From contig MU062239.1 in the NCBI GenBank assembly GCA_013265495.1, positions 1,365,860-1,429,859 on the forward strand: a stretch of 64,000 bases of DNA, read 5' to 3'. How positions within the stretch are numbered: the stretch's first letter is position 1; each line of letters starts with the position of its first letter. The position numbers and the translations under genes are program-made. The notes under the pieces are model-generated. The model made no database searches and was not told where the DNA came from. It saw nothing but the letters and a program-made list of their open reading frames with translations. This DNA is from Vicugna vicugna. Its lineage: Eukaryota. Positions 43 to 37,834 of the stretch are shown here, in pieces.

Positions 43-361
43 CAGGCGGACCTGGGAGACACTGCAGGTTTGGTTCCACCACAATAAAGCAAATATCACA
101 ATAAAGCAAGCCATACACATTTTTTTTGTTTCCCAGGGCATATAAAGTTATGCTTGCACCATACTGTATGTAGTCCATTAACGGTACAAAAGCATTATGT
201 CTAAAAAAACAATGTACAGGCCTTAATTTAGAAATAATTTATCAGTAAAAAATGCTAACCATCATCTGACAATGCAGGGTTGCCACAAACTTTCAATTGG
301 TAAAACCCACAGTATCTGCAAAGCACAATCAAGTGAAGCATAATAAAGTCAGGTATGCCTG
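43..361 (+). mobile_element. Tigger1-derived non-autonomous DNA transposon (TcMar-Tigger MITE)
   Basis: Ends caggcggacct (43) and aggtatgcctg (361) are degenerate inverted repeats; the interior (aataaagcaaatatcacaataaagc ... aaaaatgctaaccatcatctgac) resembles recalled Tigger1 5' end sequence. Confidence 0.8.
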
Positions 362-959
362 TGTTATCCCCAGTCACAGGTGAAAAACTTAAGGTTCAGA
401 GAGATGAAGTCATCAAACCAGGATCACAAACTGGCAGAGCTGGGACTAGAGGTCAGGTCTTTCCGGCCCACGTTTTCTACAGGATGGTGTGCCTTCCTGC
501 TTTCCCACATCTGTGCCTGTGGCGAGTTTTGCACAGCAGGTCTCCCAACTCATCTCTCTGAAGCTGGTCCTCACCTTTCACCACTCAGCTCTCGTCTTCT
601 AACATACGTCTCTGCACGCAGCCCTAGAAAATTCTCCACATTTCCTCCACAGTATCATAAATGAGCCCCCCAACACCCAGAACGCGTTACTGTGATTTGC
701 AGCTCAGAAGCCTCTTCCTGTTCTGTTACACTTCTTCGCAGAGCCGCTCACTTAAGTGCCTAACTATGTGCCAGCCCCTGGGCTACCACCAAGGACATAA
801 GGGCAAAGAGACATCACAGTTGTCCTGAGGGAAATCCCAGGACAGTAAATATCTAACAGTAACTGAGTAAGTTAGATTGTGCTGCATTCATGATGGAAGC
901 GCTGCACTAAGCTATGGAGGTTCCACAGAATCAGCAGAAAATTGAGAAATAAATCAGAT

Positions 960-3900: not shown

Positions 3901-5250
3901 AGCTGATATCCACCACTACAGCTATTATTCAATATTATCCTGAACTAAAATCCATTTAATAAAGCAAAAAGAGAAAAAAAGAAAGGTATAAAGGTTGCAA
4001 AAAGAGAGGTAAAACTTTACTTATATGTAGGTGAGCTCATCTATCTGTTAATCCAAAATTAACAAAATCTCATCATTTCATCAAATCTGAAATATCAAGT
4101 ATAAGACATATACATATTTTATGCACCATTGGGAAAGTTTAAAATATCATCAGCTAATTATGAGATCTCATCAATCTAAGAATGCATCCCAATTTCAGAA
4201 ATGTTCAAATGTATACCTTAGAACAATAAATACAAAAGCAATGTACAAATCCAGCAGTTCTCATGTAAGTAGTAATAACCAATCCCAAAATGTAACTTAA
4301 AAAAAAATTCCGTTCAGAATAGCAATAAAAACTATAAAATATAGAACCTGGAAATAAACCTAATAAGGAATTTATGAATTCTTATGTATTCCTATGTCAG
4401 GAATCCTGATATGAAAAAATTCTAAAATTTAACTAAAGAGATTGAAAAGAAGCATAAATAAATTGATAAGATAATTTCACATTGTAAAGATGTCATTTCT
4501 CCCCTAATTAAACTATGAACTCAACGTAATACCCATCAAAATCCCAACAGCATTTTTTGTGGAGTTTGACAAGCTCATTCTAAATTCCTCTTAAGATAAA
4601 GCAATCACCATCAGCAAAATTTTGAAAAATAAGAACAAAGAGGGAAGAATTGCCTCATAAAATATTAAAATATGTAGGAAAGAATGGTTTTGCCTAGAAA
4701 ATAAAAATTCTCTGTGCAAGAAAAGATATAAACAAAATTCAAAAGTAAGTGTCTAAGAGAAAATATTCACAATATATGTAAACTAGAAGAGGATTAAGAT
4801 CCAAAATGTATAAAGAACTAGTATACATCCATAAGCAAAAGAAAGAACCCAGCGTGGAGCCGGTAAAGGATATGAACAGACAAATCACAGAAGAGGAAAT
4901 AAACAAGGCTAAGGAACACATAAAAGAATAACCTTCCTCACTAGGAATCAGGAAAATGCAATATAAAACTAAGATGCCATTTTTCACTGACAGCCTAGAA
5001 AATTTTTTATATTTCACTATATAAAGTACTTGGCAAGGATGTGGGGAAATACATACTGATGGTCACTGCTAGTCAAAACATAATTGTATGCTCATTTTCA
5101 AGGGCAAGTTGGCAGTATTTGTTTAAATGTGCAATTCCACTTATTGGAATAAGAATTTATTTATTACCTATGTAAAAAAATACATATATATCAAACAAAT
5201 GTCTGCGTGTGCTTATGTATATATCTATCATTAAACTGTAAATAAACAAA
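960..5250 (+). mobile_element. Old fragmented L1 (L1M/L1ME-type ORF2 and 3' remnants), KIAA0753 intron 7
   Basis: A-rich plus strand with decayed ORF2 motifs (e.g. gatgatatgactgtatacac, aatactgtaaagataccaattc, gtaaagatgtcatttctcccc); no intact ORF; boundaries approximate. Confidence 0.75.
2115..2303 (+). mobile_element. Short 5'-truncated young L1 3' end nested in older L1
   Basis: 13 bp TSD aagaaccaacaat at 2102-2114 and 2304-2316; body matches the L1 3' UTRs at 7240-7410 and 19500-19670. Confidence 0.85.
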
Positions 5251-5525
5251 TTAAAAAAAAAAAGTAGAGTTCTAACTTCCAGCTTGGTTAGCCCAAACAT
5301 GATGATGCAGGAAAAGGGAAATGACTTTTCCCCACCCTTCTCTATAGAAAAATACTCCAGCCTCTAGCCTAAGGAAGCATCTTGGTTGCTATTCACTTAT
5401 CATAGTTCAAGTGCACCTCCTGTGGACTAGGTTTTAAATCCTGACTTTTCCCTCAGTGCAGTAACTGTTACAGTCCACACAATTTTAAACAAATTATCTT
5501 GCAATAAACACTGTAGGACACATAC

Positions 5526-5736
5526 CAGCAAGAAGCTTCTTTGCCACTGAAGGTCGTCCTGTTTCCTGGGGAAGTACCTCCTTTGCTATGAAGGGCCTCC
5601 TCTCACTCTTCGGAGATGTACTTTGCCATCTCTCTAAGGCCCTTTGGCTACTGATAGGAAATCTGCTCTGAACTTCACTGAAACATTTCTTTGCCTTTTT
5701 TGGTGACAGTTTCTTTTCCAGGAGGGATTCCAAAGC
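5526..5736 (-). CDS. KIAA0753: KIAA0753 (Moonraker/OFIP) exon 7, 211 bp, [27 protein letters not shown]...AKKLLA
   Basis: tggcag|GCT acceptor and G|gtatg donor; peptide matches recalled human KIAA0753; phase continuous with exon 6. Confidence 0.95.
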
Positions 5737-6863
5737 CTGCCATAAAACAGTCAATCATTCTCTTAGTTTATCTCACAAAAGTCGGACTTTTAATCACAAA
5801 ACTAAAAATGAGGAGAGAAATGTGTTATCAAATGACTATCTCTAATGGTTAATGAAATGTAACTTAATTTTAAAACCTGATTATTTAGGACATCCAATTA
5901 ATAAAAGAAATTCTGCATGTCTTTTTTCATGTTTAGCTCATAAAACCAATAGCAAAAAAAAAAAAAAAAAAAAGGAGAGAGAATATGACTACTTTTAAAG
6001 GCATCCAAATCCTAAAAGTAAGGGTCATCATTTAAGAAACCATATTAGCAGGGTGGTAAAGAGGGTGGGAAGGGATAAATTGGGAATTCAAAATTTGCAC
6101 CTTTTGGGGAATGATGGAAATGTTAGTTATCTTGATTGTGGTGGTGGTTCATAGGTGTATACATCTATCAAAATGCATCAAATTGTACATCTGAAATATG
6201 TGCAGTTTACTGTACAGGAATCATACTATAATAAAGGTGTTAAAAAATTTAAAAAGATAGAAAACTAACCACAGTCTTTAGAATATAACCCTATATGCTA
6301 TATAACCATTTTAATTCTCAACGAAAACTTCATAAACTCAATCTTTTAAGTGGTCACACTAACTATTAATTGTGTACTGTTTAATATACATTTTCATAAA
6401 CTTAAAGAAACTTAGCATGTCCAGTGGCTTTGGTCACTCATCTACCACAATGACAGGGACCTGTGCCCTGGCCTTTCTAAGAGAGGCACGCCCTCTACCG
6501 AGTAACCACTCACTCATCACCAGGCAGCAAGGGCCCATTCTCCTCTGGTCGGCACATGCTAAGGACAACTGAACATAGCCAGGGACACTGAGTTCAGATG
6601 ACAGTAAGGCAATAAAGAAACACTAAGCTGTAGGATGGTGCGGTACACATTGACAAGAAAGAAGATACTTCTTGCACTACTGAATATTTTCAAATGTAGG
6701 GGAGATAAACATTATGTTTAAGAAACATTAAGGAACTCTTGCTCAAAATTTGGGAAAGGGACTTCGGCTCTTGAGCCTTTCTAGGATTATCAAGACTTGT
6801 CTGCTAAATGAAATCATTTGGTCAATAAATGTTTCTTATAGATAAGTTTAAAAAGCATCACAT

Positions 6864-9302: not shown

Positions 9303-10399
9303 TCACTTGCAAATGAGACAAGGCTCTTCATTCATGCACCCAAAAAGAGTTTTTGTTTTCCAGTTCAAGATGGTGACTAGTGCACAGGGCTCACCTTCCA
9401 TCCCTTGGTCCCCACTGTAATGGGAATTTAACATGAAGGAGTGAAGGTGGAGGCAACTCTGGAAAGGCAGGAGGGCCAGATCAGGGGGTCTTCATAGCCG
9501 TGCTAAAGAATTTAGCTTTCACTCTCTGAGTTACAGAGAGCCACTGAAATCTTTAAGCAGTAAGGCCTGACAGGGTAAGATTCGTGTTTCAGAACAATCT
9601 CACTGGCAGCAATACAGATTAAGGACCAAAATAGAACCCCAAAACAATACAGAACAAAATCTAACACAGGGCTTACCTTTTAAATCAAAGAGTCCAGTTT
9701 TGGGTGCAAGCAGTAAGGCCAATACATGATCTCAGTGACCAGAAATGAGTTCAAGGCTTGCTAATGAGTAAGGCACTGAAGTTAAAACTAATAGTTAAAG
9801 AAATCTATCCACAATGTAAAGAATGTAAATGCCTGTTTGTCAGTCACTAAATGTGTCGTAAAAGACAAAACACATTCCTCATTCTTTACTATTTAGTAAA
9901 GACAATCAAATTCTTCATTATCTACTGAACTTCTGCTACAAAATAAACATGAGACAGATGGGAAACTAACACGGTCCCTTTTCTTTAAGACTATAGGGTG
10001 CATTAGTGGGAACCAAGGGTTTCAGAGTAACCGATCCACTTAAATTTGTCTGCAAAAATATGTGCTGGAAAAGCATTTTTTTTCTGGGGAAAGGACACAC
10101 AGTTTTTAATAGATTCTCAATAGTCTATGAACCAACCCCAAAAGTAAAAACAAACAAGCAAACCCCACTATTTAAGGATTTTGGCCATATACACACAACA
10201 CACAAACACACATAAAGGCAGAGGATGAAAAAAAAAAGAATTCTTTGTCCACGTGTTCAGTAAATTTAGCCTCACAAACATATTAGAATTCATATAGGAC
10301 ACTCTGGTGCTGATACTCCTGAGACAAAAGGAAAATGGAAGTTCCCTGAGAAGGCAATACTCAGGGCAGGACGCCCCGTCCCTCCCTGCGTTCCCGCAC

Positions 10400-10506
10400 C
10401 TGCTGCTGGAGGACGTAGAGCATTCGGGCAGAACGAACAGCTTGCTCCTGCCTCCTGACCCGGATCCTCTGCTCTTCATCTGGATCCAAAGCTTCTTGCA
10501 TGCGAT
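10400..10506 (-). CDS. KIAA0753: KIAA0753 exon 4, 107 bp, (D)[35 protein letters not shown]
   Basis: ttttcag| acceptor and CAG|gtgcgg donor; phase 1 start fits the end of exon 3. Confidence 0.95.
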
Positions 10507-12976
10507 CTGAAAATATTTTTTCCCAGAAGTGGATTATAAACCATATAGAAAACTTATAAAAACTTCAATTACTCAAAGAGATGATACGGTTGAGGAGCTC
10601 AAGTTTTATTAAGAAAAAGAAAAATGAGGTTGTTGTAACAAAAAATTTCTGTTTTCATCAGCCAAGAAACTAGGAACGAGGGAGTGGGCCTGTGTCCTGA
10701 CTCAGAGATGGAAGAGACATGGACACTTTAACTAGATCAAGCTCCCCTCCAGGCAGGAATTCCCTGAACCAGATCCCGCTGGACAGCTGACTCCACTGTT
10801 ACGCATCTCTTACTATTTTTAAATTCTTTATATTGAGCCTAAATAGGTAATGTTTTCTATGTTTTAAAAAGCCATTTATTGGCCTATTTTTCTGTTTAGG
10901 AAGATTTCTTTTATATTCTCCTTTCTTGAACCTAAAAGAGAAACCTTTTCTCCTACATGCTAAGATAGCAGTTGCTAAAATGCTTAGTGTCCAAAGTCTT
11001 CACATTTTTGTCAGGAAGCACACCCTTGTACACACTGGTGCTCCGCATTTTCAAAAGATTCACTCAAAGAAATTGCTTCTGGAAGACTGCCTGAGGGATT
11101 TGCAGCCTATCGACTCCTTCTAGTCAGCGGCTTTAAAAGATGTTCATACAAAACAACTTCTTATGCGAAACTCCAATATACAAGTCAGATAAAAGAAGTA
11201 TTTTATCAGTAAAAGTGTATTTTATAATCTCAAATTTTAAGTACTTACTCACAAAAAATTAGACGTGAAAACAGTAAGGAAGGAAGCAAAAATCTGAAAT
11301 CAGGAGTTGTAAATACAGGTGCAGTCTCCTAGGAGCCAAACTGGTTCTATTGCTTGCTCGGGCTGCACAGCGGGGAAAGCCCCAGATTCACATACTTACG
11401 TGACCACACACGGTAAGGGGCTCCTGTGGGGTTCTTAACTGCTCGCCGTGCAGGCGGCTCTGAGGCCACCAGTCTCCAGAGCAGCACGGAGGAGGCACCT
11501 CAGGGCTACTGAGCGGGCAGCTGCAGATCGGGCCATCGCAGACGTGACCAGCCCACAATGAGGTATGTGCAGAAATTCACAGTATGCCCTGACAGGTTTT
11601 TATGGCAATTTACCACTGTCATGACATTTTTATTATAGTTTACAAAGTACTTTCTTGTGACAGGCAGAAAATGTAAACTAAAAACCAACAGAGCAAAAAA
11701 CCACCCAACCAGTCCTTCCCACAGTTTGAGCAGCTCTGCCCCAAGGTCCCCAGTGTGAGGCTCCGCCCCCGGGGCAGCGGGCCTGGGGCTTTGCTCCCTG
11801 GGAGGCCAGGCCGCAGGCTGCCACCCAGGGATGTCAGGGAGCCATAATACTTCGTATTTTGATGTAGGAATGTTTTCAAATTGTTCTCGATATTACACAA
11901 CATACTCTTTACAAAGACCCACCCGAGAAATTTCTTTCTGGCCTTAGACAATTTTTCCTTACACAATTGTTCTTTCTTTGTAAATTCTGCAATTAATCAT
12001 TCTCCTCTTTAATTGACTGTGAGGAAGCTCAGAAACAAACTGCAACCCATTCCTAATAAATCTTGTTTTCCCTTTCCTTACTTTATCCTTTCCTTTATTT
12101 TTTCCTGTGCTAAAATATCCTCATCTATATATTTTTCCTCTATTTTGTTCGATCTGTTTTTGTAAGGCATCTTAAATTCCCTATGTAACATGCATACATG
12201 AACACATGCATATATTACTAGACTTTAAAATACAAAACATCATTACAGACTGTATTATCCTAGCCTAGTAGCTCCTTTTGATGCTGACTTCCTATTCCTT
12301 GCAGTCTGAAAGCTGGGCTTAAGTCTCCTATTTGTTAGCTAGGGTAACCCCAAATTTTCCACGTGGAACCAATCTTACTCTCCCCACGGAAATGCAAGGG
12401 CACATGGAATGCGGAAGAATTGTAGAGAACACTATACGATGATGATACACCTTCCTATCTACCCTGGGGTCTGATATTTGATACTGACATTTGTAATTCC
12501 CCTTGTCACGGCTGTGTACTCATCTTAACACTGCCAAAGTTAGAACTGGTTTTATCTACAATACACATATACTATGCTCTTTTCTGAACAAATTAAAAAT
12601 AATTTTGCCAGAAAGATTTCTGATTAAGAAGCAAAACATTACAGGATCATTTGCACACAGATGCCAGAAAACCTAAGGTTCAGACATCAGGGGCCACAGT
12701 TACTAGGCTGGGCCCTCAGTCGACTTACCAAGTGCAGCCTACAGAAAACCGGCTATTTCAGGTGCCTCTGCCGGAAAGAGGGGCTAGGGTAGGGCAAACT
12801 CTTCAGAAAAAAAGACACTGGTCAAACTCAAAGTCCACCTGTCTTGTCACAAATGCTCACTCTAGTGACAGAAGGAGAGACTGGAATGTGACAGGGGCAA
12901 GGGGTCCTGAAGGACTGTATTTGAATTGTACCCTCTCACGATATCTTTTCAAAGTCAGGAATACAATTTTTCTCAC

Positions 12977-13601
12977 CTCTTTTAGTTACTTCTTCAATTT
13001 TACGGATACAACTGCTCAATTCTTTCTGGAGTTGCTGAACTTCCAGCAGGCTTCTGTGTTCACACCGGCTTTTGTGGTCACCTATCCTGGCATGTGGCTG
13101 AAGTCCTGGATCGTGAGTGGGTGGCGAATTTGGCATGGCAAGATCTGACTGTCCTGGATGAGACGTGTACAGGTATACCTTGGCACCTGAGCTGGAAATT
13201 TCTACCTTGGACGGCTGGTGGCTGCCGTGATGGACTTCCCGACTCTCTGATTCCTTTCTTTCCACCCTATGGTCAGATATTTTATGCTTAGAGTGTCCAC
13301 ATTTCTGAGAGATTTGGGGCTGACTTCTGAGATGATGTTCTTTTATATGTTCTTCAAATTGTCTTCGTTTCACATCTCTTTTGGCTAGGTGGACAGCATA
13401 GCTAAGTCTCTCTTCTGATATGACAGAAAATGAAACAGAACTGCTTAGGTCAGGACCATCTCTAAAACCCAAATCTCCACAATGGTATGACTCATTGTAT
13501 GAGTGCTTCAGTTTTTCAATTCTAATTCCATGTGGGCAAGAATAGCGGATTGCCAAGTTGCTTGAATGTGTAGGAACATTCTTATTAAACTGCAGCTGGT
13601 T
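12977..13601 (-). CDS. KIAA0753: KIAA0753 exon 3, 625 bp, [20 protein letters not shown]...KIEEVTKR
   Basis: Within ORF 12936-13628; ttttaaag| acceptor and G|gtgag donor; strong similarity to recalled human N-terminal region. Confidence 0.97.
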
Positions 13602-14799
13602 CTTTAAAAAATAAATAAAAGTAAGCACACATTAGAAAAATAACATATTGCATAGTTGGTATATGTCTATAATCAAGTTTCTAAAATCTCACCTACACAA
13701 TTAGCAGTGCTAAGAGGCATTTTCCCGCTGTACTGATAGAATCGGTCAATCTCATACACCCTTGAATGAATCACACACCCCTGGTTCTACCCTGCAATCA
13801 CCCAGTCCCCAGTATTATCCTTCTGTTTACTAACAGTATACTGAAGGCCTCCTCACAAAGTCAACATGGAAAGCTTCAAGTAGAACCAGTGAGTTCAACT
13901 GTCTGGTTATGGAATTCTGCCCTGTTTCAAAATGTCAGGTTCCAGCAAGTGATCAATACAGTTCATGAGTGCTCCTAAAAATTGCTCCACAGATGCACCA
14001 CACAGAATCTAAACCATTGACAATACTGCTTCAAGTCTCCCTGAGATTTTTCATCTAGTGGTTGGACTTTCTATCCTGCACCTAAGTGCATCTTGCTCAG
14101 AGCAGCCCACTTATACCTTCTCATGCAAGCTTTTGACAGTTATAATGACAAAAGACACAAGTTTTATTGTTCACTTAACAAATATAGGCATGTTTCCATA
14201 TTCCCACAGGTTTCATTATTTTTCACAGTTGCATTTTCTAAAATCCAATGAATGGCCTTTTCATGCTTAACCTAACTGTAACTTTCTTACTAAACATTTA
14301 GATTGTTCCAGCTTTTCCACTAATAGGAATATTACTTCAGTTAGTATCTCCATGCATTTAGTTTTTTTCTCTTTTAAAATTATTTCCTTAGGATAAATTA
14401 TCTGTTCTGGGATTACTACATCAAAGGGAGCAAACAATTCTGTGGCTTTCGGCCTGTCAATGACAGGTAAACAGCCTTAGGAGACTTGTGCCTACAAATT
14501 CAGGGAGGCCTGTGCTGTGATGCTGTTCTTGGGGACGGCCTCCCCAACTCTCATGGCTTACACAATGAAGTATGGTTATATAATCACGTGTATGAAGAGT
14601 CAGCTTAAAATAAACCTATTGTGATATAACTTAAGGAGAGTATTTTGGGGGAAAAAAGTAGTTAAAAACCTCACTAGAGGTTATGAGAGAAAAAACACGG
14701 TTACCATCTGAAGGGTGCATGGAACTTATAGCCTTAATGGAGAAAGTCTTTCCTACCAGAGTAAAATTAACCTAAAATACTTGGGGGATTTGATACAAA

Positions 14800-17711
14800 T
14801 ATTAGGGGGAAAACGGGTGAATTCCTCCTTAACCTGAGTGTAGAGAAAGGTTTTCTAACTGTGACTCAAAATCCATATGTAATAAAAGTGATAAATTTTA
14901 CAACAGTACATAAAAATTTTTTAAACAAATTCTGGTTTTTGTGATTAAAAAACTCCATAAACAAAGTCAAAGAAGTGGAAAACTGGAGGAAAAATATTTG
15001 TAAATACAAAAGGCTCCTTATATATAAAGAAATCTTAAAAGCTGAGGTAAAAAAAGATCAAAACTCGGTAGAAAATGGTAAAAACACATAAACAATTAAC
15101 AACAACCAAAAAAAATATAAACATGGCCCTTAAATATATGAAAAGTTGGTCAAGCTCATAAAAATACAAATTAAAAATACAGGGAGACAGCAACAGATTA
15201 GTAAAAATTAAAAGGTGTAACAACATATGCTGTCGTTGAGGCCGGGGGAAACAGGCCCTCTCACAGAGCACGGCCGGGAGCACGGCCCTCAGAGAGGGGC
15301 TCCGGTAACATCAAAAAAGCCACACACGCCTTTACCTTTGGCCCAGCAGTCTCACTTCTAGGAATTTATGCCGAAGGTACACCCCCAACCATACATATGC
15401 ACAGGGTTACTCACTGCTGTCTTGTCTGTAATTGCAAAGTACTGAAACCAACCTAAATGCCCATGTAGGAGTGTGTCTCAAATGATCCTATGTCCACACA
15501 GAGGAGTACTATGAAGATGTAAAAAAGAATAAGGAAGATCTCTATGCATATCTCTAAGAACTCAGGTGGAAGGATTTCTCAGCAAAAAGAGCACAGTGCA
15601 AAAAAAGAATATCTGTAACCTTCTACCCTTCAAAAAAAGGGGAGAAATATTTCATGAGAAAATACACAAGCATCTGATCATTTGTGCAAAAAGAAACAAG
15701 GAAACAAAAATTAGAGACTAGCAAGATTAGGAATCACAGGGTGTGGGTAGGAACTGGCTGGAAAGGACAGAGGGAAACGGGGAGGGGCTAACACTTCCAT
15801 TTTGTACAGGCTTGTTTGGAACCATGTTAATGTTTCACATACACTAGAGAGATAGGAAGGAAGGGAGAGAAGAAGGGAGGGAAAGGATAAACAAAATTCA
15901 TAAGGATGAAGGAAAACCCTAAATATGAATGCTAACAGAAACTAACGAACCAAACTCAATTTCGAATGAATAACATAACCACACTAAAAAAGGGAGGGTT
16001 TAGTTTTATATGAAAAAAATAAAGTGAACGAAGCCTGTTAAAAAAAAAAAGTGAGGGTTAAAAAAAAAATTAACCCACTTCACTTTTGAACAGAGCATTT
16101 GGACTAAATGCCCTCAGGCCAAAGACAAAAATTCTCTAAACAAATACCGAACTCTAATTTTACGCTTCTTTTTTCATGGAAGCCTGGATTGCAGTTCTCA
16201 GTTTTGTACATTCTAGGATCGAGCACAGAGGTATACAGACTGTGGATAACGAGGCAGGTTTCCCACTGCTGAATAAGGGAGTTACAGATGGGAAAAGGTG
16301 GATCAGAATTGGAGGCATTTGTGTGAACTCATGGGTTTCAGTATAGACAGATAGGCAGATAGACAGACAGAGAGGGAGGCGAGGAGAGAGTAGGGGTGGG
16401 AGGAGCAGAAGGATGGAGCAAGGGATCCAGATGTGAGTGCAGATCTGCATATGAATATGTACACAGGCCCACAGGGGTATACATCTGCTTTCCAGTTATG
16501 TCCCCTGAGAGGGCATATGGGACAAACACAGACATCCAAGAACCAACAAGCGAGCATATCCAGTACCCAGACACGGATTTCTAAATTCCATCCTCCATCA
16601 AAGGGATGAAGCCTCCTTCGACAAACGGCTAATTTTAGGGCTGGGACAGAGGGAAAGTATGCTGGGCCTAGAATATCTTTTTATACCTAAAGTGGTCAGA
16701 GATGGATGGTAACGTGCAAGGGACACTGGAATCAGGTTCAAGTGGCTCTCACTTCACTGGCCACATCAGAGACCATTTGAATACCACACTGAATTAAGTA
16801 AGACTCTGTGAGCCTGCTCTGATACAAATAAATAAGTCACCACTTGCCAACCGTCATAATAAAAAATTGATTCAAGCAAATCATCAATGAACGCTAAACT
16901 AGCAAATGAAGTTCAGGGAGTAAACTTTATTAACAGAGTCTCAAAGGCAGAGACTTTCAATGATAAAGGTAAAAGAGTAACTTCACAGTGGAAAACCTGG
17001 CAGACACCACCTTAATTAAATGATTACAGTTAACACTGTCAGTAACTGGACAAAATGATGCCAGGCACTGAGAAGAATTCAGCATTACTTCAGTGGTTTT
17101 CCCACCACAGGTGCATAACCTGAATGTAATTATGAGAAAATTTCACACAAACCAAAACCGAGAAGAAATCCTCAAATAATCAGCCTGTATTTTTCAAAAA
17201 ATGTCAATGTCATGAAATACAGAGACATCGTTCAGATTAAAGGAAACTAAATAAACATGAAAACTAATGAAACTCATGATCTTGGGTTTTCTTTTGCTAC
17301 AAAGGACATTACTGGAACAACTAACAAAATCTTTGTAAGGTCTGTAGATTACATGATAGCATTTTAATGTTAATTTCCGGATTTTGATCACTGTACTACG
17401 ATTATATAAGAGAAATCCTTGTTTTTTAGGAAATACAAACACAAGTACTTATGGATAAAGGGGCATCACGTCTGGAACTTGCTCTTAGCCAATTTAGAAA
17501 ATAATTGTGTGTGCGTGTGTGTGTGTGTGAGTGTATGTGCACAGCGAGCCAGAGAGAGGGGGATAAAAAAGGGAGGGAAAGAGAGAGGGAGTAAAAAGGT
17601 AATAAAGTACTAACATTTGGGGAATCTGGAAGAAGGGTATCCAGGAATTCTGTGTACTATTCTTGTACCTTTTCTGTCAGTCTGAAATTATGTCAAAATT
17701 AAAAAAAAAAA
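14800..17711 (+). mobile_element. Old L1 (L1MB/L1MC-type) ORF2 end and long 3' UTR fragments
   Basis: L1 3' motifs (ctcacttctaggaatttat, cctaaatgcccat, aaaacctggcagacaccaccttaa) ending in an A tail at 17700-17711; subfamily not resolved. Confidence 0.7.
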
Positions 17712-17971
17712 NNNNNNNNNNNNNNNNNNNNNNNNNNNNNNNNNNNNNNNNNNNNNNNNNNNNNNNNNNNNNNNNNNNNNNNNNNNNNNNNNNNNNNNNN
17801 NNNNNNNNNNNNNNNNNNNNNNNNNNNNNNNNNNNNNNNNNNNNNNNNNNNNNNNNNNNNNNNNNNNNNNNNNNNNNNNNNNNNNNNNNNNNNNNNNNNN
17901 NNNNNNNNNNNNNNNNNNNNNNNNNNNNNNNNNNNNNNNNNNNNNNNNNNNNNNNNNNNNNNNNNNNNNNN
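17712..17971. other. Assembly gap (260 N); further N runs at 19090-19244, 19348-19357 and 19755-19885
   Basis: Direct reading; all gaps lie in or beside young L1/SINE sequence, as expected for short-read assembly or masking. Confidence 0.95.
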
Positions 17972-19680
17972 AAATGGTCACACTGCCCAAGGCAATCTAC
18001 AGATTTAATGCAATCCCTATCAAATTACCCAGGACATATTTCACAGAACTAGAACAAATCATAATAAAATTTATATGGAACCACAAAAGACCTAGAATTG
18101 CCAAAGCATTACTGAAGAAAAAGAAAGAGGCTGGAGGAATAACTCTCCTAGACTTCAGACAACACTACAGAGCTACAGTCATCAAGACAGCATGGTATTG
18201 GTACAAAAACAGACATATGGACCAATGGAACAGAATAGAGAGCCCAGAAATGAACCCACAAACTTTTGGTCAACTCATCTTCGACAGAGGAGGCAAGAAT
18301 ATACAATGGAATAAAGATAGCCACTTCAGCAAATGGTGTGGGGAAAACTGGACAGCAGCATGTAAAGCAATGAAGCTAGAACACTCCCTTACACCATACA
18401 CAAAAATAAACTCAAAATGGATCAAAGACTTAAACATAAGGCAAGATACAATAAACCTCCTAGAAGAAAATATACGCAAAACATTATCTCACATACATCT
18501 CAAAAATGTTCTCCTAGGGCAGTCTACCCAAGCAATAGAAATAAAAGCAGGAATAAACAAATGGGACCTAATGAAACTTACAAGCTTCTGCACAGCAAAG
18601 GAAACCATAAGTAAAACAAAACGACAACCTACGGAATGCGAGAAAATTTTTGCAAACGATGAAACCAACAAAGGCTTTATCTCCAGAATATATAAGCAGC
18701 TCATATGACATAATAAGCAAAAAACAAACCACCCAATCCAAAAATGGGCAGAAGATCTAAACAAGCAATTCTCCAAGAAGAAATGATCAATAGGCACATG
18801 AAAAAATACTCAGTATCGCTCATTATCAGAGAAATGCAAATCAAAACTATGATGAGGTATATCACCTTACACCAGTCAGAATGGCCATCATTCAAAAGTC
18901 CACAAATGACAAATGCTGCAGAGGCTGTGGAGAAATGGGAACCTTCCTACACTGCTGGTGGGAATGCAGTTTGGTGCAGCCACTGTGGAAAACAGTATGG
19001 AGATTCCTCAAAAGACTAGGAATAGACTTATCATATGACCCAGGAATCCTACTCCTGGGCATATATCCAGAAGGAACCCTACTTCAAAANNNNNNNNNNN
19101 NNNNNNNNNNNNNNNNNNNNNNNNNNNNNNNNNNNNNNNNNNNNNNNNNNNNNNNNNNNNNNNNNNNNNNNNNNNNNNNNNNNNNNNNNNNNNNNNNNNN
19201 NNNNNNNNNNNNNNNNNNNNNNNNNNNNNNNNNNNNNNNNNNNNTTGCAGCAACATGGATGTTCCTGGAGAATGTCATTCTAAGTGAAGTAAGCCAGAAA
19301 GAGAAAGAAAAATACCATATCAGATCACTCAGATGTGGAATCTTTAANNNNNNNNNNAAAAAAAGAACATAAATACAAAACAGAAACAGACTCATAGACA
19401 TAGAATACAAACTTGTGGTTGCCAAGGGGGCGGGAGTGGGAAGGGACAGACTGGAATTTCAAAATTTGTAGACACTGACAGGCATATGCAGAACAGATAA
19501 ACAAGATTATACTATATAGCACAGGGAAATATACGTAAGATCTTGTGGTAGCTCACAGTGGAAAAAAATGTGACAAAGAATATATGCATGTTCATGTATA
19601 ACTGAAAAATTGTGCTCTACACTGGAATTTGACACAACATTGTAAAATGACAATAACTCAATAAAAAATGTTAAAAAAAG
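17972..19680 (+). mobile_element. Young but inactivated L1: 3' part of ORF2 plus 3' UTR, antisense in KIAA0753 intron 2
   Basis: ORF 17974-18708 ([16 protein letters not shown]...[10 protein letters not shown]...) is typical L1 ORF2; premature TGA at 18706-18708 and later frameshifts; C-terminal Cys/His motif ([18 protein letters not shown]) in 18881-19089. Confidence 0.97.
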
Positions 19681-19754: not shown

Positions 19755-19885
19755 NNNNNNNNNNNNNNNNNNNNNNNNNNNNNNNNNNNNNNNNNNNNNN
19801 NNNNNNNNNNNNNNNNNNNNNNNNNNNNNNNNNNNNNNNNNNNNNNNNNNNNNNNNNNNNNNNNNNNNNNNNNNNNNNNNNNNNN

Positions 19886-21175: not shown

Positions 21176-21268
21176 CTGGGTCTGAAGTTTCCCGGGGTCA
21201 CTCCTCCCATCCAGTTGGACACTAGATGCTGGATGAACGCAGGCTGAGGCTGGCCTGCCTGGTCCCAT
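21176..21268 (-). CDS. KIAA0753: KIAA0753 exon 2 coding part, 93 bp, [31 protein letters not shown]; whole exon 21176-21336
   Basis: ATG at 21268 with -3A/+4G; CAG|gtatt donor; acceptor ctttctttgattttag| at 21336 (alternative AG at 21323); matches recalled human N-terminus. Confidence 0.93.
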
Positions 21269-21333
21269 TATGTCAGAGTGTAGAACAACAGTGAAAGCTT
21301 AGTCATCGGCCAACTGTTCTTCCCTAAAATCAT
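21268..21333 (-). other. 21-codon uORF ([21 protein letters not shown]) whose TAA shares its last base with the KIAA0753 ATG
   Basis: Read directly: GCA ATG ATT TTA ... CTG ACA TAA TG G; depends on use of the 21336 acceptor (a 12-codon version from the ATG at 21306 exists with either acceptor). Confidence 0.7.
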
Positions 21334-22912
21334 TGCCTAAAATCAAAGAAAGTACCTTCAGACCAATGGTATACAAAGGGAAACAGTAAGTAAAATACAA
21401 TGCTATGCTCATACATCAGTATTCTAGCAGTCCACAGCAACCTCACACTACAGAGCGAATGCTTAAACAGGTACGTAAGTTTCTTTCATTTACAATAGCA
21501 ACTACACTTTTGAAATTCAACCTTCCAAGAGAACAGGGGAACACACTATTTTAACGACTACCTCTTGAGCCTTTTTCATTCCAAATTTCAAATCTCAGGG
21601 GCCACCAGTTAAGATTTTATTCCAAAAACAGAGGTCCACTACGATACACTAGCACTTTCTAGCAAGGGAGTTTTATAGATACACAGCCTACGTTAATAAA
21701 TCTTAACTACTAATCAAAAAGCAGCATGCTTTACCTTTCTAGATAGCTCAAAAGGATAGAACTCTGAATGGCTCTAAGTAAACCTGCGGCATCAGAATTC
21801 CTAGACTGATGCCAGGAACTGCCATTAACTAGCTGAATGACCTCTATACATCTTCGATTTCCCCCCAAATGCCCCTCACCATATATTCACACACAGTGTT
21901 CAACAGATAAGTGTTCCGTAAACTACACACAAAACAGCGCCTCTCCCTACTCTGAACACCTGCTCACAGACACTATTACTATCCCTGCACTCACACACTT
22001 GCTCACATTGTTATTTACCTATTTCACGGGTATCTGTCTCATCTTCCCAGCTAGACAAGGTTCCTTGAGGGTAAGGGCCTTGTCTTGCTCGTCTCTGAGA
22101 TTTCCCACAACACAGTGCTTTGAGTATAGTTGACAAATTTAACTCAACATTCGTCGACTTAAGCAGATTTTCCATAAACTGACTAGTGTTACACGTATGG
22201 GAGAATTTGTCGTCTTTAAGAATCCCATAGGAACTCAACTGAGAAATTCAGGTTTAAAAAAAAAAATCCCTAACTTAAGCTTTCAAATAAACCCAAGGTT
22301 TGCAGACTGGATTTGCTTTAAGATTGATACATCTGTAGGAATATAAAGGCAGTGTCCAAGATTCCTTATTTCTAAGGCTGCAGAGAGATGATCAAAGGCG
22401 AAGACGGGAGGAGGCACATTGAGTGAGGCAATCCCAAATAGCCTGACTTCACCACAGTTCCGGGGCTGGGGCCGCAGAATGAAGGAGCCTGCAGGGTTGG
22501 TGCCAGGGCGTCTGCGACTTTTATGTGGTCATCCCTTTCCCTCTGGATGCCAAAGGCCTAACAGTCCATTCTCCAATAGGAAAAACCCCGGTGATCCCCA
22601 CAATTCCAGGATACCTCGAGTGAGGCTACACACACACACAAACACAAACACACACAAAGTCCAGGGACACCCACCCTGAACTGTTCCCCTATACAAAGTC
22701 CTGGGACAGCCCTCTCCTTGCAGCCTGTCCCTTTCCCACTGCTCCAGGAAATCTCCCAATTTGCTACCCCACATACTGTGAGGCTTCTCCACGCCGTATC
22801 TCTCCGCCCCATCCTAAGACACCCTCCAGCCTGTGCCTTCATCTACAACCCAGGACAAATCTCCCCCCAACCTCTTCCCCCCCAGAGCCCCAGGATCCTC
22901 ACAACTTGTGCC

Positions 22913-25900
22913 CTACATATACTCCTGGAACACCCCTGTCAATCTGTCCTCCCCCTCATAATTTTCTCCCAAGTTGTCCCCCCTCACTCTGACTCCAGAC
23001 CCTTCCCCAGTCTGTCTCCTCCCACTCTGCTGTGCATGCTGTCCGAAATGGCCAATGCCTGTTTCCCCCCTTGAATCCGGGGGCACATCCTCAGATTCAT
23101 TCAATCCCACAGCCATGCTTGTCCCGGACACTCCTGGCACATTCTCAGGGTCTGGTTCTTCCCCTACAGACCTTCGACAGCTCCATAACCTGGTCCCGCG
23201 CCCACAAGTGTAAGACACCCCGACTGCCTGGCTCCTCCCTGCCAGGCCCAGGAAACTTCTACCTCCCGACTCCCCGACTAAAGCCCCAGGGCCCTCTGTG
23301 GACTGTCTCCTCGCCACGGCGCAGCCTGAGACCGCCGCGTTCGTTTCTTCTGCGCACCCAGTCACCCACACTGCGGCAGGCCCACGCCCCGCCGTGGGAA
23401 CCCCTCCAGCTGCAAGCACCCTCCCAGACAGAGGGACCCTCACAGCCTCGGGGACAGCTCCATTGGGTCTCCTTCTCCACAGACCTGCGACACCTTCAGA
23501 GCCAGTGTTCCCGTCCATGGGTCCTGAAGCCCCGGCAGCCATGGGCACCTCAGTCCCCTGTCTCCTTCCCCACATACCTGAGCCATCCCCAGAGCTACCA
23601 TGGCCCACCAGCGGCCCGGGAACCCCAGCAGCTGTGGGGACCCTTGCAGCCATGAGAACACCAGCAGTCACTGGCGCCTCAGCAGCCTGCCTTCTTCCCA
23701 ATAAGCCCAAGAGAGCCCCAGAGGGCACCTCTTCCCCCACAGGCCTGGGCACCCCCGCAGTTGTGCGCAGCCCCATGGCCACAGGTGCTCCTGTGGTCTG
23801 TCTCCCTCCTGCCCAGTCTGAGATGCCTCCAGGGCCCAGCTTTTCCCCCACGGGCCCAGGCACCCTGAGAGTGGCAGGCACCCCCATCCTGGTGGGACCC
23901 TTGGCATCTGCAGGTCCCCACACTGTCTCTCTCTCCCCCCACAAGCCTGAGACATCTCCAGAACCAGCCGCCTCTCGCACAGGCCTAGGTGCCCTGAGAG
24001 CCACAGGCAGCCCGGCAGCTACAGACACTCCTGCTGTCACAGGTACCCCTGGAGTTGCTCTCCTTCCCGGCAAGTGTGAGAAACCCCCAGAGCCAGTCTC
24101 TGTCCCTAGCGGATCCGGCACCCTAGGAGCGGCGGGCACCTCAGCAGCCACAGGGACCCTGGTATTGTGTCTCCTTCCCCAAGACCCTGGGACAGCCCCA
24201 GAGCCCATCTCCTCACCCCCCAGCCCTGGAACCTCAGGGGCCACAGGAACCCTGTCAGTCACAGGAACCCCAATAGCCGGTCTCCTTCCCCATGATCCTG
24301 GGAAGGCCTCAGAACCAGCATCTTCCCCTACAGACCATAGCTCCTTGGGAGCCATGGGAATCCCTGAAGCCATGGCTCTCCTGGCAGTATGAACCCTTCC
24401 CCACAGGCTCAAGTCATCCCTGGAGCTGTTCCCCTGACACGCGGAGCCAGGCACCCACCCAGCAGCAGGCACCCGGACAGGTACTCTTCCAGACCCCGGC
24501 ACACCCACAGCCGTGGGCACCCCTGCTGGGGCACACCTGCGTTTGGGTACACCTGCTGCCTCTGACCTCCCCCCTGTCTCTGACAACACCACAGCCTGTC
24601 TCTTTCTACACAGACACAAAGCATCCCCATAGCTAGTCTCTTGAGCCACAGATCCAGTTCCTCCTAAAGCTGTAGGCACCAGAGCCTCTTGCTCCCCCAT
24701 TGCCTGCCTCCTTTCCCACAGACTTAAGATATTTCCACTGCATGTCTCCTCTCGGATAACCCCCGGCACCGCCTCAGCCAGAGGAACCCCCAGAGCCTGC
24801 CGCCTGCCCCACGAGCCTGGGAGACCATCATAGCCTGTCTGTCCTCCCATGGCTCCTGGAACCACCACAGCCTGGGCCACTCCCATGGGCTGTTCTGTCC
24901 CCCACAGACCCGGGACACTCCCACAGCCTGTCTCCTTCCCCAAAGCCCCAGCTACCCCCACAGGTCGTCCTGTCCCCCACAGGCCTGGGGCGTCCCCAGC
25001 ACCTGCCTCCTGCTCTTCAGGACCAGATACCTCTGCAGTCTGTACGGCTTCCCATGACCCCGAGTCACCTCCAGAGCCTGTCTCTACCCACACTGCCTGT
25101 CCCCTTTCCCTGAATCCCGGGTCACCCCCACATCTCATTCTTTCTCCAATAGCACAAGGTACCCCAACAGGCTGTCTCGTGCCCCACGGGCTAGGGAGAC
25201 TCCCAGGGCCTGTCTCCTCTACAGCTGGTCTCATCTGCCACACAACTGGGGCACCCACAGAGGTAGCTTCCTCCTCCATAGTTCTGAATACCCCTCTAGC
25301 ATCAGGCACTGCTGCGGCCTGCTCCCTCGCCCGTAAGCCTGGGGTATCCCCACAGACTGCCTCCTGTGCCAGTGCCCCAGGCACCTGCACTGACTGCTCT
25401 CTCTCCCAGAGACCTGGGGCACCACCACAGCCCAGCTCTCCCTCCACAGCTCTGGGTACCTCCACAACCTCGGGCCACCCCATGGTCCCAGGCACTCCCC
25501 TAGTTGCTCCTTTTCCCCAAGAGCCTGGGGCAACCCCACAGCCTATCCCTTCCACAGCTCCAGGCACCCCTGCAACCTGCCCTCTCCCTAGCAGGTGTGG
25601 GGCAATCCCAGAATTTGCCTCCATAGTCCCAGGCACGGTCACAGCCCAACCCTGCCCACACAGGCCTGAGGCCCTCTCATAGCCTGCCTCTTGGGAACGA
25701 GCTATTGACACCCCTGTGGCCCGGGGGAATGCCCTAGCCTGTCCTTTCACCCACGGTCCAGTAAGACCACCACGGCTGGTTTCTACCCACGAAGCCTGGC
25801 CAGGGACCCCCCTTTCAACAGGGCCCCCTCCTGCAGGCATAGGATGGAGCTCGACCCTGCTTCCTTCTCCACAACCTGAAGCTGCCCTCATAGCCTGCAC

Positions 25901-26416
25901 CTTCAACCATAGTTCCAGAATGCTCTCATGCCCCATAGACCCCGGGCGGCCTTTTCTCTCGCAGCCCCGGGGGCTCCTATAAACCATCTCCTCCTCCCCA
26001 GTGCCAGTCGCCCACACAGAGCCGACAGGCCCCACCACCTGGGGTTCCCCCACAGCCCCGTTCACCCACACAGCCCCAGAGTCCCTTGCGGCCTCCACAG
26101 AGCGTGCAGTGCCAGGTGTCCCCGCAGCCTCATTCACCCCGGCGGCCTGGGCTGTCCCTTCCGCTTGTCTTCTCCCCCACGGCCGCCTACAGTCCTGCAG
26201 CCTTTCTGCGCCCACACAGCGCGCCTCCCGCACCAAGGATCTCTCCCGGCGCCTCGCCCCACGGCTTTGGGACGTCCCTGCACCGCATCTCTTCCCCCAC
26301 GGCCGCCGGACTCCTCGCCCGGACCTGCTGGGCCCCACGCAGCGGCCGGGCGCCTCTGACGCTAGCTCGCCCCCGCGCAGCCCGGGCAAGGCCCCGCGGC
26401 CAGCCGCCCTGCTCAT
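22913..26416 (-). CDS. Uncharacterised 1167 aa Gly/Ala/Val/Pro/Arg-rich repeat protein, single-exon ORF nested in KIAA0753 intron 1
   Basis: Stop-free frame 26512-22913; first ATG at 26416, strong-context ATG at 25987; about 30 Trp codons; recurring PGxWGRRQ motif at mostly 25+6n aa spacing; the other five frames are repeatedly interrupted. Confidence 0.7.
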   Translation of the reverse strand: MSRAAGRGALPGLRGGELASEAPGRCVGPSRSGRGVRRPWGKRCGAGTSQSRGARRRERSLVREARCVGAERLQDCRRPWGRRQAEGTAQAAGVNEAAGTPGTARSVEAARDSGAVWVNGAVGEPQVVGPVGSVWATGTGEEEMVYRSPRGCERKGRPGSMGHESILELWLKVQAMRAASGCGEGSRVELHPMPAGGGPVERGVPGQASWVETSRGGLTGPWVKGQARAFPRATGVSIARSQEAGYERASGLCGQGWAVTVPGTMEANSGIAPHLLGRGQVAGVPGAVEGIGCGVAPGSWGKGATRGVPGTMGWPEVVEVPRAVEGELGCGGAPGLWEREQSVQVPGALAQEAVCGDTPGLRAREQAAAVPDARGVFRTMEEEATSVGAPVVWQMRPAVEETGPGSLPSPWGTRQPVGVPCAIGERMRCGGDPGFRERGQAVWVETGSGGDSGSWEAVQTAEVSGPEEQEAGAGDAPGLWGTGRPVGVAGALGKETGCGSVPGLWGTEQPMGVAQAVVVPGAMGGQTGYDGLPGSWGRRQALGVPLAEAVPGVIREETCSGNILSLWERRQAMGEQEALVPTALGGTGSVAQETSYGDALCLCRKRQAVVLSETGGRSEAAGVPKRRCAPAGVPTAVGVPGSGRVPVRVPAAGWVPGSACQGNSSRDDLSLWGRVHTARRAMASGIPMAPKELWSVGEDAGSEAFPGSWGRRPAIGVPVTDRVPVAPEVPGLGGEEMGSGAVPGSWGRRHNTRVPVAAEVPAAPRVPDPLGTETGSGGFSHLPGRRATPGVPVTAGVSVAAGLPVALRAPRPVREAAGSGDVSGLWGERETVWGPADAKGPTRMGVPATLRVPGPVGEKLGPGGISDWAGGRQTTGAPVAMGLRTTAGVPRPVGEEVPSGALLGLLGRRQAAEAPVTAGVLMAARVPTAAGVPGPLVGHGSSGDGSGMWGRRQGTEVPMAAGASGPMDGNTGSEGVAGLWRRRPNGAVPEAVRVPLSGRVLAAGGVPTAGRGPAAVWVTGCAEETNAAVSGCAVARRQSTEGPGALVGESGGRSFLGLAGRSQAVGVSYTCGRGTRLWSCRRSVGEEPDPENVPGVSGTSMAVGLNESEDVPPDSRGETGIGHFGQHAQQSGRRQTGEGSGVRVRGDNLGENYEGEDRLTGVFQEYM

Positions 26417-26821
26417 AGCCCCAGGACGACTCCCGCCTTCCCAGCGCAGCTCCGGGGCACTTTCTGTTTTAGCACCAGCTCCCAAGGAGGCTCCACACAC
26501 CCACTCACACACTCAGCTCCAGCTCTCGCAGCCTTCCTCAGTCCCAGCCCCCTACCCCCGCCCAGTCCTGGACGCCCGCCCCCTACTGGTCCCGGCCCCC
26601 ACCCCCACCAAGCCCTGGCAGGAGAAAAGGTAAATAGGCCCGACGAGCGGAAGGATCTGCCCCGGCTCAAGGTCTCCTCTACCCCAGGTCCATGACTCCT
26701 AGCGCAGCTTCCCAGAATCCCCCCAGCTCTGGCCCGAGCCCACCTGGCCTGGGGCGCGGCGCGGCTACCCGGAACCGGGCAGGGGGGCCGCAACTAGGCC
26801 TCGCTTCCGGCCGCTCGCCCA

Positions 26822-26835
26822 GTCGCCATGGCAAC
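26822..26835. promoter_or_regulatory. RFX X-box GTCGCCATGGCAAC
   Basis: 13 of 14 match to the palindromic X-box GTTGCCATGGCAAC, inside the promoter CpG island of a ciliopathy gene. Confidence 0.75.
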
Positions 26836-26877
26836 GGGCGCAAGGCAGCTTGGGAGCCGTTAAGGCTCCAAAGTCAC

Positions 26878-27060
26878 CTAAAGGTCCAGGGACTGCGTAG
26901 CGGTAGGCTTTACAGCCACTGCTTATGGGGCTGGGGCCAGGACCAGTTTGGGGCAGAAGCCAGGGTTTTAGGTGCAGCCAGCACGGGAAGACCTGCGAAA
27001 CGGAGCAGAATGACGGCACGGAGGAGTTACGACCATCAGAGGCTCCCGTAGCACCCCAGC
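26878..27060 (-). other. KIAA0753: Putative non-coding exon 1 of KIAA0753 (5' limit uncertain)
   Basis: Donor TAG|GTGACT at 26878/26877 in the CpG island; exon 2 has an acceptor upstream of its ATG, so an upstream exon is needed. Confidence 0.5.
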
Positions 27061-27182: not shown

Positions 27183-27327
27183 ATGGCCGGCTACAAGGAG
27201 GTGAGTGTCGCCGGCTACGAGGACTTCATGCAGGCTGTGGAGCAGCACAATGGCAAGACCGTATTCGCCTACTTTTCCGGTTCTAAGGACGCCGAAGGGA
27301 AAAGCTGGTGCCCGGACTGCGTGCAGG
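27183..27327 (+). CDS. TXNDC17: TXNDC17 (TRP14) exon 1, MAGYKEVSV...KSWCPDCVQ, contains the WCPDC active site
   Basis: ATG at 27183, G|gtgagt donor; WCPDC is the TRP14 redox motif. Confidence 0.97.

Positions 27328-37014: not shown

Positions 37015-37834
<820 letters not shown>

Follow-up and report, generated by a model that had tools for sequence, protein, structure and literature searches.

Promoter, first intron and transcript structure at the KIAA0753 locus

The question raised by this locus is whether a stop-free frame of 3.6 kb, lying in the first intron of KIAA0753, encodes a protein, and from which transcript such a protein would be made. The window that we analyzed is a stretch of 64,000 nucleotides (nt) from Vicugna vicugna (contig MU062239.1, positions 1,365,860 to 1,429,859, forward strand), and the frame lies on its minus strand, the same strand as KIAA0753, the gene of the protein MNR (moonraker). 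An earlier note, made from the letters of this DNA, had regarded the frame as a hidden gene. That observation and the interpretation given to it are both correct; the gene is real and is already annotated. We think that the frame is a genuine coding cistron restricted to placental mammals, that it is carried by an alternative KIAA0753 mRNA with a long first exon, and that LOC122526781 of mouse and uKIAA0753 of human are its orthologues. We put the probability of this whole explanation at about 0.8.

The open frame in the window

The stop-free frame extends over 3597 nt (22916-26512) and ends at a stop codon at 22913-22915. Its first in-frame ATG is at 26416, so that the coding sequence (CDS) of what we call the upstream protein occupies 22913..26416 on the minus strand as a single exon of 1167 codons and a stop. 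Over the same 3.6 kb, the other two minus-strand frames contain 33 and 37 stop codons, and the plus-strand frames contain 9, 26 and 28. The frame includes 31 TGG codons, and the observed/expected ratio of CpG along it is 0.8 in the first 400 nt and 0.17-0.45 beyond. These values agree with the earlier note, which had reported a stop-free frame of 3.6 kb for 1167 amino acids (aa), about 30 TGG codons, and CpG depletion outside a 5' CpG island; both peptides that it quoted occur in the translated frame. It had also stated that the other frames break within 1.1 kb. The breaks are there, but the limit was set slightly too low, as the next longest stop-free stretch in the window, on the plus strand, measures 1176 nt.

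The frame sits in a 5-kb GC-rich island (62-71 % GC) with a strong excess of G on the minus strand, and 51 % of its first codon positions are G. If stops were as dense as in the other frames, 1199 codons free of them would occur with a probability of about 4e-16. We also simulated the 5-kb island with 400 first-order and 400 second-order Markov sequences. The longest stop-free run was 509 nt on average in the first-order and 702 nt in the second-order simulations, with a maximum of 1506 nt, and none of the 800 reached 3597 nt. No tandem array that could account for the frame was detected by TRF within the open reading frame (ORF), and a plus-strand ORF of 364 aa antisense to it (23298-24389) gave no Pfam match.

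Orthologues of the upstream protein

Among 5.8 billion proteins searched, 61 were full-length relatives (892-1203 aa), with E values from 0 to 1e-159, 40-70 % identity and 71-99 % coverage. These relatives cover all four placental superorders, that is, warthog, ruminants, many bats, lemurs, monkeys, gibbons, colugo, shrews, mole, carnivores, rabbit and pika, together with many rodents, armadillo, elephant and tenrecs. The supposition of the earlier note that a gene model might exist in other mammals was therefore right, since models are present in about 60 placental species. A camelid copy was absent from the matches of the protein search, and the upstream protein may be unannotated in this family.

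The mouse entry is the RefSeq record NP_001382938.1, "uncharacterized protein LOC122526781" (UniProt A0A0N4SUT6, filed under 4933427D14Rik, which is Kiaa0753). The mouse protein is 52 % identical to the window protein, and the warthog model is 72 % identical. The mouse protein and the predicted (XP) models share with the window protein the position between TXNDC17 and the first MNR coding exon, the single-exon CDS, a similar length and an invariant core; the window protein differs from them in ending three codons later. LOC122526781 probably corresponds to MGI Gm43951, a link that rests on one UniProt name, and in the literature Gm43951 appears only in lists of differentially expressed genes from mouse heart and endothelial cells. 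Most of the other entries were named automatically, for example as "collagen alpha-2(I) chain".

In human, Nomura & Dohmae described uKIAA0753 as a long alternative-ORF protein, encoded by an upstream ORF (uORF) of KIAA0753 variant X2 that is out of frame with the CDS; its peptides were found in SH-SY5Y cells by mass spectrometry, with the spectra of synthetic peptides as the check (10.1101/2025.07.27.667088). The likeness of uKIAA0753 to the ORF of the window is taken from the description in that preprint. The preprint contains no analysis of conservation, domains or transcript structure. It reports that uKIAA0753 resembles by BLAST only predictions named "collagen", and takes this likeness at face value; these "collagen" entries are misnamed orthologues of the upstream protein. 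We found no functional study of the upstream protein in the literature, and none on the mouse accessions or on PhyloCSF together with KIAA0753.

The position of the gene is also conserved. In warthog, cow, vampire bat, mouse and elephant the order is Med31, TXNDC17 on the opposite strand, the single-exon ORF and the MNR CDS, and the MNR CDS begins 1.4-1.9 kb beyond the ORF. The window has the same arrangement, with coding exon 1 of TXNDC17 at 27183..27326 (plus strand; PF06110, E = 2e-13), the ORF at 26416-22913 and the MNR start codon at 21268, the latter two on the minus strand. TXNDC17 diverges from a CpG island that it shares with KIAA0753, as it does in warthog, cow, bat and mouse. The window aligned collinearly with the orthologous loci at 75-80 % DNA identity in exons and introns alike.

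Outside this group we found no relatives. An exhaustive phmmer search of the conserved core (see below) against 1.84 billion representative proteins gave 14 matches, all of which were placental orthologues or fragments of them; no paralogue and no marsupial or non-mammalian relative was among them. Neither the whole protein, nor the core, nor a profile of 42 orthologous sequences matched Pfam or PDB.

We also considered an origin from a transposon or retrovirus and rejected it. Pfam domains of gag, pol, env, reverse transcriptase or transposase are absent, and the core search returned single-copy orthologues only. The earlier note had likewise seen no resemblance to L1, to ERV or to a host gene that its author recognized.

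Purifying selection on the frame

We calculated dN/dS, the ratio of nonsynonymous to synonymous divergence, by the Nei-Gojobori method for the window against warthog, cow, bat and mouse, and also among those four. The in-frame value was 0.42-0.47, with bootstrap 95 % confidence intervals within 0.37-0.56. As a control for the skewed composition, the same nucleotide alignments were read in the two shifted frames, and dN/dS was then 0.87-1.04. The divergence at third codon positions was about 1.5 times that at first and second positions.

The phase of insertions and deletions was analyzed in pairwise DNA alignments that were built without reference to the protein. Within the ORF, every indel was a multiple of 3 in the comparison of the window with cow (10/10), vampire bat (11/11) and mouse (28/28). 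Against warthog this held for 7 of 9; the remaining two add up to 45 nt. In the 1.6 kb of intron next to the ORF, indels are 2-4 times more frequent per kb than in the ORF, and most of them are not multiples of 3.

These results show that the frame has been kept open, in phase and under purifying selection across placental mammals, between the bidirectional TXNDC17/KIAA0753 promoter and the first KIAA0753 coding exon. Selection on the protein, which the earlier note had proposed, is thus seen both in dN/dS and in indel phase, and both signals are specific to the frame. That note had also named what would speak against it, that is, scattered stops and frameshifts in the orthologues, a dN/dS near 1 and the lack of a transcript; we looked for each of these and found none.

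Architecture of the upstream protein

The protein is rich in Gly (18.6 %), Ala (11.9 %), Val (10.5 %), Arg (9.3 %) and Pro (8.5 %), with a predicted mass of 118 kDa and an isoelectric point of 8.6. A hydrophobic N-terminus or signal is absent from the 1167 residues. AlphaFold2, run with the 42-sequence alignment, gave a mean pLDDT (predicted local distance difference test) of 33, and disorder was predicted for 1144 of the 1167 residues. The expectation of a probably disordered Gly/Ala/Val/Pro-rich protein is therefore in agreement with both composition and structure prediction.

Two regions can be distinguished. The first is a conserved core at residues about 105-225 (25742..26104, minus strand), which holds all of the invariant columns of the 42-sequence alignment (29 columns, within residues 116-225). 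Residues 151-200 show 87 % identity over 62 sequences and a dN/dS of 0.11 with an ordinary dS of 0.6; thus the constraint on the core acts on the protein and not on the DNA. Inside the core, residues 166-180 (25877..25921, minus strand) are predicted to form an alpha-helix with a pLDDT of 63-76, compared with about 30 elsewhere, and this helix is the sole structural element predicted with confidence.

The second region, residues about 280-1000 (23417..25579, minus strand), consists of about 25-30 degenerate repeat units of 31-43 aa arranged around a conserved Trp, with the motif PG[LS]WG[RT]RQ..GVP. Comparison of the DNA with itself gave 18 same-strand matches of 68-80 % identity, and 16 of them lie at in-frame offsets. 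The repeat part has therefore grown by old in-frame duplications. Comparison of the protein with itself by blastp detected no repeats at E <= 1e-3. Trp is the best-conserved residue type over the 62 sequences: at about 20 of the 31 positions, Trp is retained in over 70 % of the sequences, and replacements are to Arg, Cys, Leu, Ser, Gly or Gln, never to a stop.

Transcripts that carry the ORF

The ORF lies entirely within intron 1 of KIAA0753 as mapped from the canonical mouse transcript (contig L012), in which a short exon 1 (9434-9645 of mouse sequence L004) is joined directly to exon 2 and the ORF is skipped. The description of the ORF as nested in intron 1 therefore holds for the canonical mRNA. 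In four other mouse RNA contigs, which lack introns and were assembled from different public sequencing runs, a long 5' exon is spliced to exons 2, 3, 4 and 5 of KIAA0753. On L004 this exon starts at 9751-9840 and ends at 13647 (3.9 kb), with the ORF at 10001-12889; one contig begins inside the ORF, at 10264. In one of these RNAs (L005, 7.9 kb), from which the introns are removed, the ORF (251-3139) is followed some 800 nt past its stop by the complete 959-aa MNR CDS (3944-6823). That is, two non-overlapping conserved ORFs are present on one mature mRNA in mouse, and the same organization is likely for the window. Of the two kinds of transcript that the earlier note had suggested, independent or alternatively spliced, the mouse contigs point to the latter, in the form of an alternative long first exon spliced to exon 2.

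By homology to the four mouse contigs, the long first exon of the window is expected at 22019..26640 (minus strand), with an approximate 5' end and the donor as its 3' end. The donor reads GAAATAG/GTAAAT, with the exon end at 22019 marked by the slash, and does not differ between the window and warthog, cow, bat or mouse. Of the sequence from the ORF stop to exon 2, the part around this donor, about 0.9 kb after the stop codon, is conserved best. The intron that follows would be 21324..22018 (minus strand), with the acceptor at 21324 or 21319, so that exon 2 begins at 21323 or 21318. Exon 2 (21176..21323, minus strand) contains the MNR start codon, an ATG aligned in the five species, and matches MNR residues 1-32 by tblastn.

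The 5' ends of the long-exon contigs in mouse lie 90-200 nt downstream of the canonical exon-1 donor. This pattern favors an alternative start in the same CpG island over simple retention of intron 1. Between the presumed start (about 26640) and the ATG of the ORF there is no ATG in the window, warthog or cow, and there is one six-codon mini-ORF in mouse.

The transcripts also bear on another explanation, which is that the ORF is an independent monocistronic gene nested in intron 1, with its own promoter and 3' end and no functional link to the KIAA0753 transcripts. In its favor, NCBI lists the ORF under gene identifiers of its own (LOC122526781 in mouse, and the XP models), a fifth mouse contig (L008) runs unspliced past the donor of the long exon, and an AATAAA occurs at 21621 in the window, about 400 nt past that donor. 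However, splicing to KIAA0753 exon 2 is seen in four of the five mouse RNA contigs, and one of the four contains the entire MNR CDS. When the sequences are aligned, warthog, cow, bat and mouse lack the AATAAA, and from the ORF stop to exon 2 the window and these four species have no other poly(A) signal in common. The donor, in comparison, is the same in all five species. We therefore consider a free-standing gene unlikely, and the feature is best described as the upstream cistron of an alternative KIAA0753 transcript.

Proposed explanation

In mouse, two classes of transcript leave the CpG island, and the identical splice signals suggest the same for the window. In the canonical class, the short non-coding exon 1 would be spliced over the ORF to exon 2, and ribosomes would reach the MNR start codon. 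In the second class, a first exon of about 4 kb with the whole ORF would be spliced from the conserved donor to the same exon 2 and the rest of KIAA0753. The AUG of the ORF would be the first start of a long ORF on this mRNA, and since no earlier AUG is present in the window, warthog and cow, it would be translated by normal cap-dependent scanning. The MNR CDS on the second mRNA is probably translated little or not at all; the spacer from the ORF to the MNR ATG on the spliced mRNA of the window is 947 nt long and has 12 AUGs, which counts against translation of both ORFs from one mRNA. Ribosomes that scan this mRNA would translate the ORF and rarely arrive at the MNR AUG, and it would therefore depend on the first exon used which of the two unrelated proteins is produced.

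As for the product, we suppose, with less confidence, a mildly basic and nearly wholly disordered 118-kDa protein that would act through a strongly conserved module of about 120 residues near its N-terminus. One amphipathic helix, the one predicted in the core, would be the likely partner-binding motif, and the Trp/Arg "sticker" repeats within Gly/Ala/Val/Pro spacers suggest a multivalent scaffold.

Several points weigh against this explanation or limit it. At the DNA level the ORF is no better conserved than the flanking intron (identity 0.78-0.81 and 0.80-0.83, respectively), and therefore most residues are weakly constrained; judged from the alignments, the constraint is strict on an open, in-phase frame and weak on most residues. 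The transcripts come from mouse and from the human preprint only, all DNA recovered for cow, bats and other species being genomic, and the exon structure in the species of the window is deduced from conserved splice signals. The 5' ends of the contigs are not mapped transcription starts, and the long-exon RNA may arise by retention of intron 1 from the canonical start. By the 50-55-nt rule, an mRNA with a stop codon far upstream of exon junctions is a target of nonsense-mediated decay; because the ORF stop lies far upstream of many junctions, the long-exon mRNA should be such a target, which would limit the amount of protein. The idea of a scaffold that binds partners rests on composition and a single predicted helix.

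The position of the ORF upstream of the MNR CDS on the same mRNA also fits a purely cis-acting uORF, in which the act of translation lowers MNR synthesis and the peptide is a by-product. The preprint argues that long alternative ORFs regulate the reference CDS in cis, the genes tested there being others (10.1101/2025.07.27.667088). However, an early stop would keep such a block, so that there would be no reason to hold 3.5 kb open for about 100 million years, and the dN/dS of 0.11 in the core, the conserved Trp positions and the in-frame indels would be left unexplained. We regard this possibility as very unlikely in its pure form; a cis effect may exist in addition to a functional product.

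Two further readings are already refuted and have a negligible chance of being true. A non-coding frame, open by chance in G-rich, GC-skewed and repeat-derived sequence 3' of a CpG-island promoter, would suit the GC content, the G excess and the origin of much of the region from old internal duplications, but it is contradicted by the calculation and simulations given above, the frame-specific selection, the intact orthologues in about 60 species and the reported human peptides. A collagen or collagen-like extracellular protein, as implied by the automatic names of most NCBI orthologues (collagen alpha-1(I), alpha-2(I) or alpha-2(IV) chain) and by the richness in Gly and Pro, is contradicted by the absence of a Pfam collagen match (PF01391) even at E <= 1, by a longest Gly-X-Y run of 5 triplets, by 11 occurrences of G..G..G against 7.5 expected, which is the level of chance, by the failure of the 42-orthologue profile to find any collagen chain in PDB, and by the lack of a hydrophobic N-terminal signal.

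If the upstream cistron explanation is taken one step further, the locus could be a two-protein unit in which the upstream protein is a partner or an antagonist of MNR/KIAA0753 at centriolar satellites. The core helix would then dock on a satellite or centriole component, and the Trp/Arg array would give multivalent contacts. The basis of this speculation is the shared promoter and mRNA together with the protein composition, and we hold it to be unlikely. If it were true, some "intron 1" variants of this Joubert/oral-facial-digital syndrome gene would be coding changes in a second protein.

Comparison with known systems

SNURF-SNRPN and MOCS2A/MOCS2B are mammalian two-cistron transcripts. The locus studied here resembles them in that two conserved, unrelated frames stand on one mature mRNA, as seen in mouse, with the upstream frame read first. 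It differs from them in the size of the upstream cistron, which at about 1000-1200 codons is as long as the main CDS, in the long spacer with many AUGs before the main CDS, and in the restriction of the upstream cistron to an isoform with an alternative first exon. Because of this last difference, the two proteins probably come from separate mRNAs rather than from one and the same.

GW182/TNRC6 proteins have disordered regions with Trp repeats, the GW/WG "Ago-hook" motifs. The upstream protein shares with these regions a disordered, Gly-rich chain in which numerous conserved Trp recur at regular intervals, and the window protein contains 16 such motifs (13 WG and 3 GW), compared with an orthologue median of 9 (8 WG and 1 GW; range 4-13). 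Unlike in GW182/TNRC6, the Trp are much better conserved than the neighboring Gly, and they usually have Leu, Ser or Val before them and basic residues after them. Pfam and protein searches showed no sequence similarity of the upstream protein to any GW/WG-repeat protein.

Significance

The mouse RefSeq record, the XP models and the human peptides of the preprint were already known. To this we add measurements of selection, a layout of core plus repeats, a transcript model and the dismissal of the collagen label. Intron 1 of the ciliopathy gene KIAA0753, normally taken as non-coding, encodes a second, unrelated protein as long as MNR. Variants in the ORF interval thus need to be read as coding changes, and experiments in which the 5' end of KIAA0753 is deleted or edited may eliminate both proteins. 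Dozens of database entries bear an incorrect "collagen" name, which should not be passed on. The gene also offers a clear case of a large and mostly disordered protein, restricted to one lineage, that has grown by internal duplication around a small, strongly constrained core.

The host gene and other features of the locus

The identity and strand of the host gene, which the earlier note had given as KIAA0753, are fixed by a large coding exon at 12945..13604 (minus strand), because it matches the MNR family (PF15718, E = 5e-113); it is also matched by tblastn. With MNR proteins as queries, tblastn located six coding exons on the minus strand between 21271 and 5524, corresponding to MNR residues 1-440. 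These exons are 92 % identical to MNR of Camelus dromedarius, compared with 74-86 % for other orders.

The canonical non-coding exon 1 of KIAA0753 is placed at 26744..26955 (minus strand). Its 3' end was mapped at the donor CCAG/GTGGGC (exon end 26744), which is conserved among the compared species, and its 5' end is approximate, from the length of the mouse exon. This exon contains an 11-codon mini-uORF (MATGRAAGSEA followed by a stop; 26794..26829, minus strand) that hardly differs in cow, bat and the canonical transcript of mouse; the warthog version has two codons fewer. The mini-uORF may have a role in regulating how MNR is translated from the canonical mRNA. Immediately 3' of the canonical exon-1 donor, about 40 nt (GAGCTGGGGGGATTCTGGGAAGCTGCG..., 26700-26740, minus strand) scarcely vary among the window, warthog, cow, bat and mouse. 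Since the mouse long-exon transcripts begin just downstream of this stretch, it could serve as a core promoter element or in splicing.

Mouse exon 2 has two acceptors 4 nt apart (L004 14285-14291), which give introns of 639 and 643 nt; both acceptors are in the 5' untranslated region, and AG dinucleotides are found at comparable positions of the window (21318-21324). An (AC)14 microsatellite is located at 22628-22656, about 260 nt 3' of the ORF stop and within the 3' part of the long exon. Four runs of N (556 bases in all: 17712-17971, 19090-19244, 19348-19357 and 19755-19885) lie in the KIAA0753 intron downstream of exon 2 and inflate one plus-strand stop-free stretch, 17686-18705.

One assembled contig (SRR13177417) carries contiguous Med31 and TXD17-like ORFs, apparently spliced, together with the upstream ORF, which suggests that the assembler merged overlapping transcripts from MED31, TXNDC17 and the 5' end of KIAA0753. 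Beyond MED31, warthog and mouse have a small gene of 123-129 aa without a Pfam domain, presumably a C17orf100 homologue, and it aligns to 37450-37800 on the plus strand of the window (L001 167-538).

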